A stretch of DNA of 62,989 bases, filler included, from Olpidium bornovanus S191 (GCA_017911155.1; 30 parts of 30 records of this genome joined end to end with filler, not necessarily neighbours in it), one strand, 5' to 3'. Counted from the first letter of the whole stretch, positions 3,058-50,887 are shown. Notes: generated from the letters alone by a model not told the origin. Program-made: numbers and translations.

Positions 3058-3456
3058 TTGCAGTTTTGCTTTGGGGATTCCGCCCCTTTCTATGCTTCTC
3101 TCTTTAAAAGGAGCCTCGATGACTCGACAACCGCGCCGAACAGCCGTGAGACGACTCTTGCTGAGAGCGACGGCTGCTGTGAGGAAGCTGATATCCTCGC
3201 AAGGATACAAATCGCTCTCGAGGATGGTCCGCTGGATAACGACGGCCTCGCCAACTTGTTCCACAGTCTTCTTAGGGACGACGACCCCGAGTTGTTCGAT
3301 CACGCCGCGAGCACTCCCCAGTGGGCGGAGGCTTACCATGACGGTCTCGAACAGTTTCTCCAATTGATGCGTGTTTTCGACGAGAACGGCGACAGAACAG
3401 TAGACTTGGGCGAATTCACGCGTGCTGCGCAGACGTGTGGCCTGGGCTCCGCGTAG
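3058..3456 (+). CDS. EF-hand protein, start uncertain
   Basis: The acidic ORF ends in a canonical EF-hand loop, FDENGDRTVDLGEF (D-x-N-x-D-x-T-x-D-x-x-E), with the stop at 3454-3456. The true N-terminus or upstream exons were not resolved. Confidence 0.5.
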   Translation: MQFCFGDSAPFYASLFKRSLDDSTTAPNSRETTLAESDGCCEEADILARIQIALEDGPLDNDGLANLFHSLLRDDDPELFDHAASTPQWAEAYHDGLEQFLQLMRVFDENGDRTVDLGEFTRAAQTCGLGSA

Positions 3457-3557
3457 GNNNNNNNNNNNNNNNNNNNNNNNNNNNNNNNNNNNNNNNNNNN
3501 NTTAATTAATTAANNNNNNNNNNNNNNNNNNNNNNNNNNNNNNNNNNNNNNNNNNNN

Positions 3558-3890
3558 AAGCTCAACGAGGAGCTCCAGCGGACCACGCTGTGGGACAACG
3601 TCGCCCTGCGCAAGGTGGTCCTCGTCGAGGCGCTGCCCAAGCTGCTCCTGGACACCCTCGACCTCGACACGATCATGGAGCGCATCCCGGACAACTACAT
3701 CCGCGCGATCTTCGGAGCCTACCTCGCCAGCCGGTGAGCCCAGAAACCAAAAAAAAAAAAAAAAATTGGTTCAGACCCCGTGCCCGTTTGAAACGGACGC
3801 GGGGGGGGCGGGTTTTGGCCGCATCCTCCGTTTTTCCCTTCCCCGCGCCTCTCACCCACCCTTCCTTTGCGAGCGGGGCCCGGCGGGGGG

Positions 3891-3928
<38 letters not shown>

Positions 3929-4286
3929 CACGCGGAAAAAAAAAACTGCGGCAGGTTCGTGTACAAGTACGGCATTTCGACGTCACAGTTTTCGTTCTTC
4001 GAATTTATGGTACGGACTCTCGACCTTTCTTTGGGGTGGGGGGTGTTTCTGGACCTGCGTCCAAGAGTGGGGAGGAAGGAAGGCGCCGGAAGCCGGAGAC
4101 GCTGACGATTCGTTTTGCCCCCGCGCGTTTTTCCCGGCCAGATCCCGTACTTTGCGAAGGTCAGTTGCCGCCCTGTCGTTGCGTTCTCCGCGTTCTGCTG
4201 CTCCCGGCCCCACTGACAGCTCTCTTTCCCACTTCCCCCCCCCGTGTGATGCGTCCCTCCGTCAGGCAAGCCAAGGACTCAATTAA
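3558..4286 (+). CDS. GDH2: NAD-specific glutamate dehydrogenase, C-terminal exons
   Basis: Exons 3558-3733, 3955-4009 and probably 4266-4286 give LWDNVALRKVVLVEALPKLLLDTLDLDTIMERIPDNYIRAIFGAYLASRFVYKYGISTSQFSFFEFM, the characteristic C-terminus of large fungal NAD-GDH. Confidence 0.85.
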
Positions 4287-4757
4287 TTCGAACAAGAAGC
4301 GCGACGGAAGGACGGGAAGGAGAGGGGGGAACCGAGGAGGAGGGAATTCTTTTCATCTTCCACCGGCCGCCCCGGATGCCCCACCTTCCTTTCAACTTTA
4401 TGCGAAAAAGCACCCCTATCTTTTTTTTTAAAAAAAAATTTTGCGATGAGAATGGGAGGCTTCCCGGCGGGTAGAGTGTTGGAAAAAAAAGGAAAGAAAA
4501 AAGAAAGAAAACGGGGGGCCGGGGAGGAGGGGGGTGGGGGGGGGGGGGGGGGGGAGAAGGGAGGGGGGGGGGGGGGGGGGGGATGGTGAACGAGGGGAGG
4601 AGGAGGAGGAGGAGGCGGAGGAGGACGAGGAGGACCAGGACGAGGACGAGGAGGACCNNNNNNNNNNNNNNNNNNNNNNNNNNNNNNNNNNNNNNNNNNN
4701 NTTAATTAATTAANNNNNNNNNNNNNNNNNNNNNNNNNNNNNNNNNNNNNNNNNNNN

Positions 4758-45607: not shown

Positions 45608-46101
45608 CTAAAAGCTGACAGANNNNNNNNNNNNNNNNNNNNNNNNNNNNNNNNNNNNNNNNNNNNTTAATTAATTAANNNNNNNNNNNNNNNNNNNNNN
45701 NNNNNNNNNNNNNNNNNNNNNNCCCCCCCCCCAACAAAAAAAAAAACCCCCGGCTTTGGGGACCAACGCCGGCGCGCGCGGGCCACGGGGAGAAAAACGC
45801 GGGGAAAGAAACTCATCGGTTTTTTTTTTCTGCCTGGGCGTGAGAAAACGGAGCCTGTGTGGGAAACCCGAGGACGGTGGTGGCTGCGGGTGCTCGAGCA
45901 GCAGTGGTGCCGACAGCGTGTTGCGCTTTCGGCTCTGCCTTTTTATTCCTTTGTACGCGGGGATTCCCGGCGGTCAGGCCCTCCAAAACGGGAGGCGCTT
46001 CTTTGTTGATCACGAAGCGTTTCTTTGTTGATCAAGAGGCGCCTCAAAAACAACAACAACAACAAAAACTTGGAACACGGCGGCGGGGAACGTTCGCCGC
46101 G

Positions 46102-46102
<1 letters not shown>

Positions 46103-46136
<34 letters not shown>
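46103..46136. repeat. (CA)17 microsatellite
   Basis: Read directly from the sequence. Confidence 0.95.
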
Positions 46137-46139
<3 letters not shown>

Positions 46140-46276
46140 CCTGCGGCTGCGGTGGGTGGGGCGGGGGGCGGAAAAAGCCCATGCGTATGCATTATTGAAA
46201 AGAGAGACTGGCACCCTAAATAAATAGTAGATCGGCGGGACGTCCAACGCTCTCGCTCGTCGTTTCGTGGGCCCGG

Positions 46277-47618
46277 CTACAGGGGCCCGTTAACGGGCCT
46301 CCCTTCCGGCAGGACCACGTGGACGGGCGGGGGCCCGGGCGGGGAGACGGGGATCTTTCCGCTCTTGGCTTTCGGGTCGTACAGCGGGACCTCCGCCGCG
46401 ATCTTGAGCTCGTGCATGCGCGGGTCGTTCTGGTCGATGGCGAGCACCTTCATGTCGGGGAAGTTGGCGAGCAGCAGCTGCTTGAGCTGCGGAAGGAAGT
46501 CTTTGGACGGGCCGAAGGTGCCGGAGCCGTTGTCGATGACGAGGACGGGGAGCTCGGTGCCCTCGGGGACCGGCAACTGGCCGGGGGCCAGGGACGGGGG
46601 GGTGGTCATGTGGTCCGCGCGCGGGTCGTCGGCCAGCGGCACGAACGGCGCGTGCTGCAGGCGGTGGTCGCCGGAGGCGCCGCGGACGCGCCCGGCTTCG
46701 GCGTCTGCCTTCGCGCTGGCGGGCAGCCGGTCGGCGGGGACGACGAACATCTCGCCGGCGAACATCACGTCGTGGTTGCCGTCCGCCAGCACGATGTGCT
46801 TGGAGATGTCGTCCAGTCGCTTATCGAAGCCGGTCTCGCTGAACCGGATGAAGCCGTCGCGCACGACGAACGTGAACCGCTTGCCCCCGCGGCCCCAGTC
46901 GAAGACGTCAAAGAACCCGCGCGCGTCCTTCAGCTCCCCGAATTCGCCCGCTCCGTTGAGGATCGAGTGCCGGAACCGGTGGTACAGCTTGCGGAGGGGA
47001 CCCGTGTACGGCTTGGAGTTTTTGATGATCGTCGGGTGGTCGGGTTTGCCGACCTGATTTTTTGGATTTTTTTTTTTTTTGGTTTTGGGTTGGTCAGCTC
47101 GGCGTCCGGGGAGTTTTTCTAAACCGCGTAAAAAAAAATTCCTTTCTTTTTATTTTTTTTTTGTTTTGTTTTGTTACCTTTCGGATGCTGCCAAAGATCT
47201 TCTCGCTGTTGTGCAGGTCGACTGAGTACACGTAGTAACCCTTGTCACCTCCGAACAGGGCCTCGCTGACGCCCTCGACGAACGGCTCCACGAACTTGTT
47301 ATGGTACCTGCGCCACTTGATGGGGCCTTCGCGCCGGGTGACCAGGGCGGCGTCGCTCCAGGAGGTGGGCCCGAGGAGCGCGACGCGCAGTTTCACGTCG
47401 CCGACGCCGCCCGAGACGGGCGCAACGACGGTCTGCTCGCCGTCCGAGGGCTGCATGCCCCCGCTGACGAGGGGGCCGAGGTTGACGTCGGCGTCGCCGA
47501 GCCACTTGTTCGCGCGGATCTTCCGGCGCTCCCAGAGGCGGAGGGTCAGGGTCGCATCGTCGGGGACGTTGCGCAGGACGATGGTGTCGTTCCAGCGGGC
47601 GCCGCTGCCCTCCTCCTC

Positions 47619-47653
<35 letters not shown>

Positions 47654-47690
47654 GGTCGTGGTCGTCGTCGTCGTGGTCGTCGTCGTCGTG

Positions 47691-47722
<32 letters not shown>

Positions 47723-48020
47723 AGACATCGCCCGGCGGCGACGTGTAGACCTTGTACCCGCCGGCCTTGCTCTCTGGCAGCAGGACCTTCTCCTGGTCGG
47801 TGATCGGGCCCAGGTAGCGGGACCGCTGGCCCGTGGCCCCCGCCCCGCGGAACACGTAGCTGAGCACCACGTCGAAGTACGGGTTCTTCAGATCGTCGTC
47901 GGACGTCGCGACGGAGTCCAAGGTCAGCCGGATGTCGACGCCCGCGGCCGCGAGCGCGGCCGCAGCGCCGAACCCGGCGACTGCCGCGGCGACGCAGACG
48001 ATGTTCCGGCGGAAAAGCAT
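46277..48020 (-). CDS. secreted C2-domain protein with Asp/His insert and conserved uncharacterised C-terminal domain (539 aa)
   Basis: Exons 48020-47178 and 47053-46277 (GT-AG, phase 0); complete gene. It has a signal-peptide-like N-terminus, a C2-like region (WNDTIVLRNVPDDATLTLRLWERRKIRANKWLGDADV) and a poly-D/H/E insert. The C-terminus GGKRFTFVVRDGFIRFSETG..DDISKH..FAGE..LVIDNGSGTFGP..LPQLKQLLLANFPD resembles a fungal C2-domain family I recall. Confidence 0.85.
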
Positions 48021-49649
48021 TATGACGCGGGGTGGAGGGGGCGGGGCAAAGGCCCAGGGTCTCTATGGGCTGGGGTGCCGAGTTGGCGGGGGGAGAAGAG
48101 GTCCGCCGGGGTGGTGATCTTAAAATACGTCGGTGCGACCTGCGAGCGGACGCGGAAACAGCGAGAAACGCCAACCCTCCAGCAACCTCGCCCCCCTTCC
48201 CGCGTGGGGCGCCGTGTTCCCCCCCCCCCCCCCTTTTCTTCGCGTCTTCCACGCGCCCCTCCGCTGCCCCCGTTTCCACGCTTCTTCGGCCGCGCCGCTC
48301 TGACGCACGAGGGAGGGGGGGGGGAAGGGGTGCGGCGCGTCCGCCGCTGCCGCTCGTTCCCTCTGCTGTTAGCGACGGGGGGAGGGGCGCACGTTGTCGC
48401 TTCGCCGGAAGTTTTTTTTCTTCACCTCCCGCGTTTCGATCTCCAGGGGGGAAAAAAAAAATTCTCCGATTTCTCCCCTTCCCTCCACGACGGCTTCCCC
48501 CCCCCCCCCCCCCCTCCCCCCCCCCCCCCACCTTTCTCCGTTCTTATTGGCCGCCCGCCCCGCGCGCACCCCCCGCCGCGTGCGCGCCGGAAACACGCCC
48601 GCCCCCGCATCTCCCACCCCACCCAACCCCCCCCCTTCCTCGGGAGACAGGCACATGGGCCCCTCAACCCCTTTTCCCCGCGGGGACGGGGGAAAAGGAT
48701 GTCTCCTGCTAGTACGCGCGCGCGCGCGCTAACGGCGCAGCTTGAGGGCGGGGGCGCGGGGTCGGTTGGTGTGGGGCGGGAGGGGCGGGGGAGGGGGGGT
48801 GGAAGCAGATGTGGGGTGGGGAGTGGTGGAGTAATAGGATGGGTGCGGCGCGGTAACGCGAGGGCACCGGGCAGCAGCAAATGGGAGAGGGGCACCGAGG
48901 AGCCCCTACCTGGCGGTGTCACGGAAGGGCAAGGCGGAAAGGCGGGCGCAGCGGGCATTTCACAGGCGGACGGTCGTAATTTTCCCGGCCCGCGCGCCGG
49001 GCGCCGGACACTACCCCCCGCTTTTTCCCGTCGACAACTCTCCCCTCCCCCGCCCCCGCAAAACGAGGATCCGGGGTTTCCAACCTCCTTCTTTCGCGGA
49101 ATCCGACAATCACGCGCCTAATTTATTTATTTATTTATTTTTTTTTTTCACCGGACGAAAAGTCGCGGCGGGGAAGAAGTGACATCCTCTCCTTCCCCAA
49201 CACCACCACCACCACCACCACCACGGCCCCAACCACGGCCGCCACCACCACCACGGCCCCCAACACGGCCGCCATCACCACCACCATTACCGCGCGGCGC
49301 GATGAACGGGGGTGGGGAAGGGGGAAGGAAAGGGGGGCGGGATGGGGAGTGGGGGGGTGACGGTAGGGAAGGAAGTTGGGGAAGGGGGGGGGGGTCGTTT
49401 TTGCCGTCATCATTATGGAGGGAAAAAAGAAGATTCCTTGGGGATTTGCGCGGGAGAAAGGGCGGGACTGGGGAGAGGATTTCGGGGGGAAGGGGGGGGG
49501 AAGATTTTGACCTTCGCGCGGGTCCGCGGAGGTCGGTTTTCAGCGTCAAAAGGACTCCGGGAAGAGCGGCGCGCACGCGCGAGTGGGGGGGGGGGGGGAC
49601 AACAAACAACAACAACAACAACAACAACCAACAAAAAAAGAAAAAAAAA

Positions 49650-49757
49650 CGACCCACAAAGCAGAAAAGTTTCCCGGGCGCATTTTTTTGTTTTGTTTTT
49701 TTTCGACCCACAAAGCAGAAAAGTTTTCCGAACGCATTTTTTTGTTTTGTTTTTTTT
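49650..49757. repeat. 54-bp tandem duplication in low-complexity intergenic DNA
   Basis: CGACCCACAAAGCAGAAAAGTTT(C/T)CCG..CGCATTTTTTTGTTTTGTTTTTTT begins at 49650 and again at 49704. Confidence 0.85.
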
Positions 49758-50560
49758 GTTTTGTTTTTTTTTTTTGGTCTGGCAAAAGATTGTCGATCCC
49801 CCCCCCCATTTTCCGTTGAGAAGGAGCTGTCTCTCCCACGCCCCCTCCTCCATCCCTGGTGAGAGGAATCTTTTTTCCCCTCGCCCCCTTATTATTTCCC
49901 CGGAAGTTTCCCCTTCCGCGCTCACAAGTCGAAGTCGGGCCCACGCGATCCCAAATTCCTCCCGCACGGCGGGCGGAAGGAGAAAAATGGGGGGGCGGGG
50001 GGGAATAGGGAAGAAGAACGACGAGAAATAAGGGAGAAGTAAGGGCGATCCCTTATTTTCCTTCTCCTTTCCCTTATCCCCTCGACACACGGCCCCCTCC
50101 GGAAGGGATGAACCGATTCCGCGGGAGGAGCGCAAAAATTGCTTTTCTTTTCCCCCCCCCCTCTCCCCCGTCTCTCCCTTCTCCCCCCCTCCCCCCTCTT
50201 CCCGTAACGGGACCCGGCCACCCCATCCCCCGCTCCACCCCACATTTCCTCATAACGGCGCCGGCCGGCTCCAGCGTACACGAGCCCCGATCCCGCCGCC
50301 GCCGTCGTTTTCGATCATTTTTTCTCTCGCCAGCTCACTTTCGCCGGCGCGGCATCCCGCCTGAGCCCTCCCGCCGTTTTTCTACCGCCGCCGCCTACCC
50401 CTCCTCATTTAACAACCCGGGCGGACAAAACCGCGGGCCGCCATTTTTTTTTTCCCCCCTTATAGTCGCTTACGCCCCCCCCCGTCTCCTCAAAATCTTG
50501 CTCCGCGTTGGGGGGGGTTTTTTTTTTGTTCCTCCTGTGCGTTGATACTCTCGGCCGGGG

Positions 50561-50744
50561 ATGTCTACGCCCCGCGCGGACCGGCGCAACAACGGCAGCT
50601 GGTTCGTGTCGTTCGACGGGCCCTGCGGGTCGGTCCCTCTCCCGCTCTGCCAGCTGGTGGGGTTTCCCGCCGGCCAGGGGAGCACGCCCGCGGTATGTTA
50701 CAACCGGAACACGGAGCTGTTCGGCCAGATCGTCCTGATGCCAT
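50561..50744 (+). CDS. CHS7: Chs7-like chitin synthase export chaperone, N-terminal exon
   Basis: FVSFDGPCGSVPLPLCQLVG...PAVCYNRNTELFGQIVLMP matches the family N-terminus F.SFD.IC...PL.LC.LVG...P.CY.RN.E. It ends at a GTAAGT donor. The start codon is uncertain. Confidence 0.65.
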
Positions 50745-50887
50745 GTAAGTCTTTATTCCTGGTTCCTCCTCCCCTCCTCCTCCCCCCNNNNNNNNNNNNN
50801 NNNNNNNNNNNNNNNNNNNNNNNNNNNNNNNTTAATTAATTAANNNNNNNNNNNNNNNNNNNNNNNNNNNNNNNNNNNNNNNNNNNN

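Follow-up and report, generated by a model that had tools for sequence, protein, structure and literature searches.

The stretch of DNA analyzed here, hereafter the window, comprises 62,989 nucleotides, filler included, from the Olpidium bornovanus S191 assembly (GCA_017911155.1), in which 30 parts of 30 records were joined end to end. Positions 45723-50787 of the window correspond to a GC-rich contig of 5,065 bp, and the minus strand of this contig carries a complete gene of two exons that encodes a protein of 539 amino acids (Table 1). The predicted product matches, with 100% identity over its full length, a deposited protein named 'MAG: hypothetical protein BJ554DRAFT_233 [Olpidium bornovanus]' (P0001 in our protein collection; MAG, metagenome-assembled genome), and it is called BJ554DRAFT_233 below. 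From the amino terminus onward the protein consists of a hydrophobic leader, a degenerate C2 domain, a conserved alpha/beta module and a disordered tail. The comparisons presented here place it in an unnamed and widespread eukaryotic family that combines a C2 domain with this module, and the leader of the Olpidium copy suggests that the protein may enter the endoplasmic reticulum (ER).

The source assembly is a metagenome bin obtained from non-axenic zoospores, and its genes were annotated with MAKER (PMC7865070). The locus is a real Olpidium bornovanus gene. Its intron has a GC content of 31% compared to 68% in the exons, and the GC content at third codon positions (GC3) reaches 94% in the spliced coding sequence. 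The initiator methionine is preceded by an A at position -3 and by an in-frame stop codon 45 nt upstream with no intervening ATG, and it is the sole workable start, no further methionine being found ahead of the first C2 strand. The preliminary description of this DNA had reported a complete gene for 539 amino acids, and its coordinates, length and list of motifs were all correct according to the gene model and the identity with the deposited protein.

Table 1. Features of the BJ554DRAFT_233 locus, in positions of the window.
Feature	Position	Strand	Basis or detail
Complete two-exon gene, 539 aa	46277..48020	-	Stop codon at 46277-46279; equals the deposited protein
Exon 1, residues 1-281 (281 codons)	47178..48020	-	Translation; ATG context and upstream in-frame stop
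Intron, 124 nt, GTAAC donor, CTGAC branch point, CAG acceptor	47054..47177	-	Splicing restores the frame
Exon 2, residues 282-539 (258 codons) and stop	46277..47053	-	Translation
TATA-like element TATTTTAA	48120..48127	-	107 nt upstream of the ATG; consensus match only
Leader, residues 1-27: MLFRR, Ala/Val/Gly-rich hydrophobic core, Ala-rich stretch	47940..48020	-	Hydropathy and charge pattern
Degenerate C2-fold domain, about residues 28-222	47355..47939	-	AlphaFold2 model, Foldseek, sub-threshold Pfam match, column comparison with relatives
Asp/His/Glu tract, residues 101-137 (37 residues), inside the insert of about 70 aa in a C2 loop	47610..47720	-	Predicted local distance difference test (pLDDT) <50
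Period-3 tandem repeat, 34 copies, 92% match	47620-47722	-	TCG on the plus strand, GAC in coding sense; encodes the acidic tract
Conserved alpha/beta module, about residues 225-505 (about 280 aa), spanning the intron	46382..47348	-	HMMER relatives, alignments, AlphaFold2 model
Invariant S365-K366-H367	46796..46804	-	58 of 58 aligned relatives
F-A-G-E, residues 379-382	46751..46762	-	G381 invariant; E382 kept in 57 of 58
Variable insert, about residues 386-450, from AGE strand to DNxSGT loop	46547..46741	-	Spacing and pLDDT
D455-N-G-S-G-T-F-G-P463 loop between beta strand and helix	46508..46534	-	D, N, S, G, T and P invariant
Pro-rich disordered C-terminal tail, residues 506-539	46280..46381	-	AlphaFold2 model

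Determination of the family to which the protein belongs was based on an exhaustive HMMER scan of 1.84 billion representative sequences using residues 139-539 as the query, which recovered 321 relatives with E-values of up to 1e-3, 37 of them with values of 1e-10 or lower; apart from the protein itself, the best match had an E-value of 2e-15 and 30% identity. All the motifs that had been listed for the C-terminal domain are present and in the order given, namely FTFV (residues 341-344), SKH (365-367), FAGE (379-382), IDNGSGTFGP (454-463) and NFP (478-480). They are far beyond chance because they form the conserved blocks of the family, whose consensus reads FTYV..RFSETG..SKH(A/M)H..(Y/F)AGEF..variable insert..(L/V)IDNxSGTYxP..L..NFP. 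Ten positions are invariant over the 58 sequences aligned (S365, K366, H367, G381, D455, N456, S458, G459, T460, and P463), and BJ554DRAFT_233 retains all of them in addition to E382. Substitutions affect four positions that hardly vary in the family (Y343F, H370L, F383M, and Y461F), and Y461F is common to 18 of 147 relatives. The spacing between AGE and DNxSG is 72 amino acids, compared to a bimodal spread of 10 to 295 amino acids in the relatives. The AlphaFold2 model built with the family alignment reached a predicted template modelling score (pTM) of 0.73 over the complete chain and of 0.75 over residues 225-539; pLDDT values were 85-96 in the core and below 50 for residues 408-436 of the insert. 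In this model the module has an alpha/beta architecture in which the SKH motif is part of a helix, AGE belongs to a strand, and D-N-x-S-G-T occupies the loop that connects a strand to a helix.

The invariant polar residues would fit an active site or a ligand-binding site, and the module is probably an enzyme or a binder of small ligands, considering these residues together with the position of the Ser/Gly/Thr loop between strand and helix. Alpha/beta folds usually bind phosphate groups in strand-to-helix loops. Comparison of the modelled module with solved structures in the PDB by Foldseek, a check proposed for the C-terminal domain in the preliminary description, returned no toxin-like or other significant neighbour (best E-value 0.38, probability 0.03), and the same search of BFVD gave nothing below an E-value of 0.089. 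Sequence searches of the PDB with the whole protein and with exon 2, as well as searches with the family profile, produced low-complexity or chance matches or none, and BJ554DRAFT_233 had no match in NCBIfam. When 67 module sequences were scanned permissively against Pfam, no family recurred, and there were only scattered chance matches in single members, one of them to a toxin-antitoxin family at an E-value of 0.05. The top Foldseek rows, corresponding to beta-lactam synthetase, amidotransferases and adenylate-forming enzymes (probability <=0.09, TM score <0.15), were regarded as noise, and so were the toxin-like CNF rows (46-48 columns, probability 0.07-0.09). At most, the enzyme rows hint at a Ser/Gly/Thr loop of the phosphate-binding type. 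The toxin-like domain suggested previously found no support in the PDB, BFVD, Pfam, NCBIfam, sequence or profile searches, and the 'effector system' proposed with it comes down to a single gene on a 5-kb contig, with no system around it.

The named relatives belong to the Basidiomycota and Ascomycota, a green alga, an amoebozoan, diplonemids and marine protist transcriptomes, with taxa that include Mycena, Flagelloscypha, Chaetothyriales, Monoraphidium, Luapelamoeba, Sulcionema and Diplonema. Every one of those checked is annotated as 'hypothetical protein' or carries a bare transcript identifier. A significant N-terminal Pfam C2 match occurs in 49 of the 58 aligned relatives, and none of the 58 has a Pfam model covering the C-terminal part. 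Other partner domains are C1 in P0106 and P0143, the latter also having a PH domain, while four proteins without C2 (P0043, P0141, P0101, and P0038, the first two from diplonemids) begin with a membrane helix followed by a basic cluster. This arrangement predicts an N-out/C-in orientation, and the anchored bodies of these four are therefore expected to face the cytosol. Since the module is always fused to a part that recruits it to membranes (C2, sometimes C1 or PH, or an anchor), we infer that it works at membranes, and its earlier portrayal as a membrane-targeted module was fair. The expectation that homologues would be annotated only as C2-domain proteins and lack a leader was also essentially right, as a hydrophobic N-terminal segment of any sort was found in only 7 of 150 family members.

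Members such as those of Mycena galericulata (KAJ7493224.1) and Chaetothyriales sp. (RMD43869.1) share with BJ554DRAFT_233 the same order of C2, linker and module and all ten invariant residues, with HMMER E-values down to 2e-15. In contrast to these relatives, the Olpidium protein has a signal-like leader, a degenerate calcium site and an Asp/His/Glu tract of 37 residues, and it differs from them in its 72-amino-acid insert, in the four substitutions given above and in having the longest branch. Its terminal branch was the longest in every tree, at 1.1-1.7 substitutions per site compared to a median of about 0.5, and its placement was unstable, since the trees put it with a protist 'SGTF' subgroup and BLASTP ranked members of the Dikarya clade first. 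A search for homologues by word index with residues 225-539 retrieved the protein itself only, two other searches of this type were swamped by poly-Asp words, and a scan of metagenome contigs for a close orthologue found none.

The trees also separated the family into two well-supported clades, one with long inserts (about 20-285 amino acids between AGE and DNxSG) that holds the Dikarya and the amoebozoan, and a second one with mostly short inserts (0-20 amino acids) that holds protists and algae. The top HMMER match to the module only was P0004, with 40% identity, which was not among the top BLASTP matches. It is an exon-like fragment located at 3399-4639 of a eukaryotic Logan contig (L001, from SRR30952579) that has 70% GC and is rich in poly-Q and poly-A. 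This contig looks like that of a green alga and not of Olpidium, and the adjacent call on the upstream side of the fragment codes for the portion of the module that precedes it.

The region between the leader and the module had been described as a C2-like module, and the C2 fold was recovered in the AlphaFold2 model despite a Pfam score below threshold. The match to the Pfam C2 family (PF00168) reached 13.9 bits, compared to a gathering cutoff of 22, with an E-value of 0.063 and covering only residues 142-188. In turn, Foldseek assigned the model a probability of 1.0 to solved C2 domains (E-values of 1e-4 to 1e-2), including those of CAR4, dysferlin C2A, Itch and NEDD4, with which it shares the beta-sandwich, and a search with the whole chain returned C2 domains only. 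Column comparison showed that the calcium-ligand positions, at which 71-81% of the sequences of relatives have aspartate, are occupied by D43, N46, E164, R166 and N171/K172 in BJ554DRAFT_233 (D46N, D164E, D166R, D171N, and D172K), so that of the five ligand aspartates of loops 1 and 3 four are lost and one is kept, in addition to one glutamate. Moreover, a disordered insert of about 70 amino acids splits the conserved P-x-W. Thus, compared to typical PF00168 domains such as those of Arabidopsis CAR4 and dysferlin C2A, the Olpidium domain has the same fold with a sub-threshold sequence, a single calcium-ligand aspartate plus a glutamate, and an insert in P-x-W. The loss of four of the five aspartates together with the long acidic insert indicates that calcium-driven recruitment is probably gone. 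An overlooked intron beneath the acidic tract was considered and rejected, because the tract is GC-rich, in frame and made of a (GAC)n repeat, unlike the AT-rich true intron. The length of this (GAC)n tract is likely to vary between isolates.

The hydrophobic leader reported in the preliminary description was also present. After MLFRR, 22 uncharged residues extend from N6 to G27 and form the only hydrophobic segment of the protein (Kyte-Doolittle mean of 2.28 over 19 residues). The charge ahead of this core is +2, with a further +1 from the free amino terminus, and it is -3 over the 15 residues that follow, and the first 28 residues of the protein include no acidic residue. The Ala-rich stretch offers many small residues at positions -3/-1, and GC3 over the leader codons is 89%. 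Judged by rules, these are the features of a signal peptide, comprising the MLFRR n-region, the hydrophobic core, the Ala-rich c-region and the flanking charges, and they would suit a type II anchor equally well. The leader can be read in two ways, either as an h-region of 11 residues (IVCVAAAVAGF) followed by cleavage sites in the c-region or as one uncleaved type II anchor. The usual family arrangement, with C2 at the very N-terminus and no leader, does not apply to BJ554DRAFT_233, in which the 27-residue leader comes first, and the survey of the family confirmed that such leaders are rare. The anchored relatives carry their basic cluster behind the helix, whereas in the Olpidium protein the charges are reversed and two arginines precede the core; combined with the positive-inside rule, the charges of its leader predict translocation of the C-terminal body. 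No ER retention signal (KDEL/HDEL), hydrophobic end or glycosylphosphatidylinositol (GPI) signal was detected at the C-terminus. From these features of the sequence, entry into the ER appears somewhat likelier than its opposite, and secretion is plausible.

Homologues outside the eukaryotes were rare. Scanning 185,579 prokaryotic genomes for the module detected one locus, an open reading frame (ORF) at 42-764 on the plus strand of CALDHR010000055.1 (L002), a MAG assigned to the Oligoflexia. The encoded protein has 240 amino acids, a Sec-type signal peptide (MKKYYLFLLSLFTSLSIFSQC) and the whole module with its motifs intact (SKH, SGEF and DNNSGTYAP), and no C2 domain; its gene adjoins genes for LivG/LivF-like ATPases of a branched-chain amino acid ATP-binding cassette (ABC) transporter, on a contig with 38% GC. 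A second protein, P0066, also has 240 amino acids, a hydrophobic N-terminus and no C2, and is encoded on a 34.6-kb Joint Genome Institute (JGI) metagenome contig whose context looks bacterial, in that gene starts overlap and the neighbours include a Lon protease as well as an EpmA-like tRNA-synthetase paralogue. A toxin/immunity gene context was found neither at the Oligoflexia locus nor around P0066. By BLASTP, the bacterial homologues matched BJ554DRAFT_233 with 25% identity (E-value of 6e-10) and with 30% identity over a partial match. They share with it a hydrophobic leader joined to a module with the signature motifs intact, but differ in their shorter length, in the absence of C2 and in their bacterial gene contexts, and they are not its closest matches by BLASTP. 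A sister relationship between the Olpidium and bacterial proteins was rejected, given that the pairing in the tree joins long branches and BLASTP ranks the Dikarya clade first. The bacterial copies are probably rare transfers from eukaryotes, and the two of them show that the union of a hydrophobic leader with the module has arisen more than once. In BFVD, proteins of a Hyperionvirus (A0A3G5AB55) and of Mimivirus LCMiAC01 (A0A481Z1S4) showed 28% identity over about 80 columns (E-values of 0.14 and 0.61) and could represent partial homologues. No copy of the module turned up when viral contigs were scanned with a pattern.

Similarity to the core of the plant IQM proteins had also been suggested, and this held for the order of the motifs and not for statistical significance. 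In hhalign comparisons with rice IQM sequences, taken from a paper supplement damaged by optical character recognition, the two families aligned collinearly, pairing WIFVL, FQH, AAGRL and SGHYxP of IQM with FTYVI, SKH, YAGEF and SGTYxP of the family, at a P-value of 0.023-0.024. The family hidden Markov model (HMM) scored at best 5.6 bits on the same damaged IQM sequences, close to the 5.1 bits of the best of 1000 shuffled decoys. Besides, no IQ motif was found in BJ554DRAFT_233 by pattern scan, and hhalign aligned K366, E382, D455 and N456 with different residues in IQM. The link to IQM is therefore a weak lead rather than a finding. The IQM family is described in the literature as plant-specific, and should structure confirm the link, it would gain relatives across eukaryotes.

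A neighbouring gene is represented by its first exon (MSTPRADRRNNGSWFVSFDGPCGS...; 50561-50744, plus strand), closed by a GTAAGT donor beyond which the gene continues past the end of the contig. This exon has a weak, sub-threshold Pfam match (E-value of 0.0055) to the N-terminus of Chs7, a chitin synthase export chaperone, which together with the fungal-type intron of the BJ554DRAFT_233 gene is consistent with a fungal contig. The two genes are separated by about 2.5 kb of extremely low-complexity DNA (48180-50540). Besides runs of poly-C and poly-G, this spacer contains a direct repeat of 54 bp at 49650-49757 and two trinucleotide tracts, (CCA)n at 49197-49286 and (ACA)n at 49599-49634. A (CA)17 tract was found at 46103-46136, downstream of the 539-amino-acid gene.

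Altogether, the interpretation that we favor, with slightly more confidence than doubt, is that BJ554DRAFT_233 is a leader-bearing and fast-evolving copy of the unnamed C2 plus module family with predicted entry into the ER. The module would act at membranes as an enzyme or small-ligand binder, the C2 domain of the Olpidium copy would no longer be recruited by calcium, and the added leader of 27 residues would direct the protein into the ER either as a cleaved signal peptide or as a type II anchor, leaving its body lumenal or secreted. A number of observations weigh against this interpretation. The mature protein has no cysteine, and the rest of the family has a cytosolic character. The family-invariant D-N-x-S-G-T loop always forms an N-x-S sequon (N456-G-S458 in BJ554DRAFT_233), harmless in the cytosol and a possible liability for a protein passing through the ER, where it would be at risk of glycosylation. 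No orthologue or paralogue that could show that the leader is kept was recovered from the protein collection or the metagenome contigs, the contig is only 5 kb long and comes from a binned metagenome of non-axenic zoospores (PMC7865070), and what points to catalysis is conservation alone. Furthermore, the 22 uncharged residues, rich in Ala and Gly, would also suit an anchor that is not cleaved. Such an N-terminal anchor could have replaced the calcium-dependent recruitment of C2, keeping both C2 and the module on the cytosolic face of the membrane, in parallel with the anchored diplonemid relatives and with synaptotagmin-like proteins. This would account for the decay of the calcium site and sidestep the problem of the sequon, the segment is long enough to span a bilayer, the partner domains in the family are all cytosolic membrane binders, and the four relatives with a membrane helix have dispensed with C2. 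Nevertheless, the arginines before the helix and the charge of -3 after it predict an orientation opposite to that of those relatives, and we consider a cytosol-facing anchor unlikely. The leader could also be an artefact, in that the first exon may be wrong, the segment may be a mitochondrial presequence, or Ala/Gly codons may have produced it by chance at such a high GC3. This might be suspected from an automated MAKER model on a binned metagenome, from a leader rich in the residues that GC-rich sequence tends to encode, and from the lack of acidic residues at its start. However, the first methionine is the only possible start, with the upstream stop, the A at -3 and the TATA-like box at -107, the GC3 of the leader matches that of the coding frame, and the two arginines with the high hydrophobicity make a mitochondrial presequence unlikely, so that this explanation is the one to which we attach the least credence.

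The function of the module and the destination of the protein allow further readings. As in the plant IQM proteins, the module might be a scaffold that binds proteins or lipids, its invariant residues being structural or part of a binding surface. Published work on IQM names only binding partners, including calmodulin, catalase and IAA proteins (PMC9271181), the motifs are collinear with the rice IQM core, and no catalytic fold was recognized for the module. On the other hand, the similarity to IQM is not significant, IQM differs at four conserved positions, and ten invariant and mostly polar residues common to fungi and diplonemids speak for an active site more than for a scaffold, which makes this reading doubtful, although worth bearing in mind. 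Regarding the destination, BJ554DRAFT_233 could, as the preliminary description suggested, be an effector, which the intracellular thallus would secrete into the cytoplasm of the root cell to act on the membranes or the signalling of the host. In favor of this, Olpidium lives in roots as an obligate endoparasite (PMC7865070), the leader resembles a signal peptide, the C-terminus carries neither an ER-retention nor a GPI signal, the cysteine-free body suits a reducing cytoplasm, the very long branch fits a change of function, and the two bacterial homologues likewise join a leader to the module without C2. However, that long branch may merely reflect the extreme GC bias of the genome, a housekeeping paralogue, which would leave this copy available for a new role, was not found, neither sequence nor fold showed similarity to toxins or effectors, the single gene has no system around it, the invariant loop carries its sequon, and secretion is predicted from the leader only. 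An effector role is thus distinctly unlikely. A broader scenario, in which the root parasite rerouted a cytosolic module for export by means of a new signal peptide, the module being perhaps a distant relative of IQM that acts in the host cell, and in which bacteria independently did the same, appears to us more improbable still.

The Olpidium copy is a natural variant that combines a signal-like leader with a decayed calcium site, and it could show whether the module is able to function outside the cytosol. Overall, the more durable result is the family rather than the Olpidium gene. Its module of about 280 amino acids, distributed from fungi to diplonemids with rare bacterial copies, has neither a Pfam model nor a solved relative or recognizable neighbour in fold, which makes it a well-defined target for the description of a new domain and the discovery of its activity.

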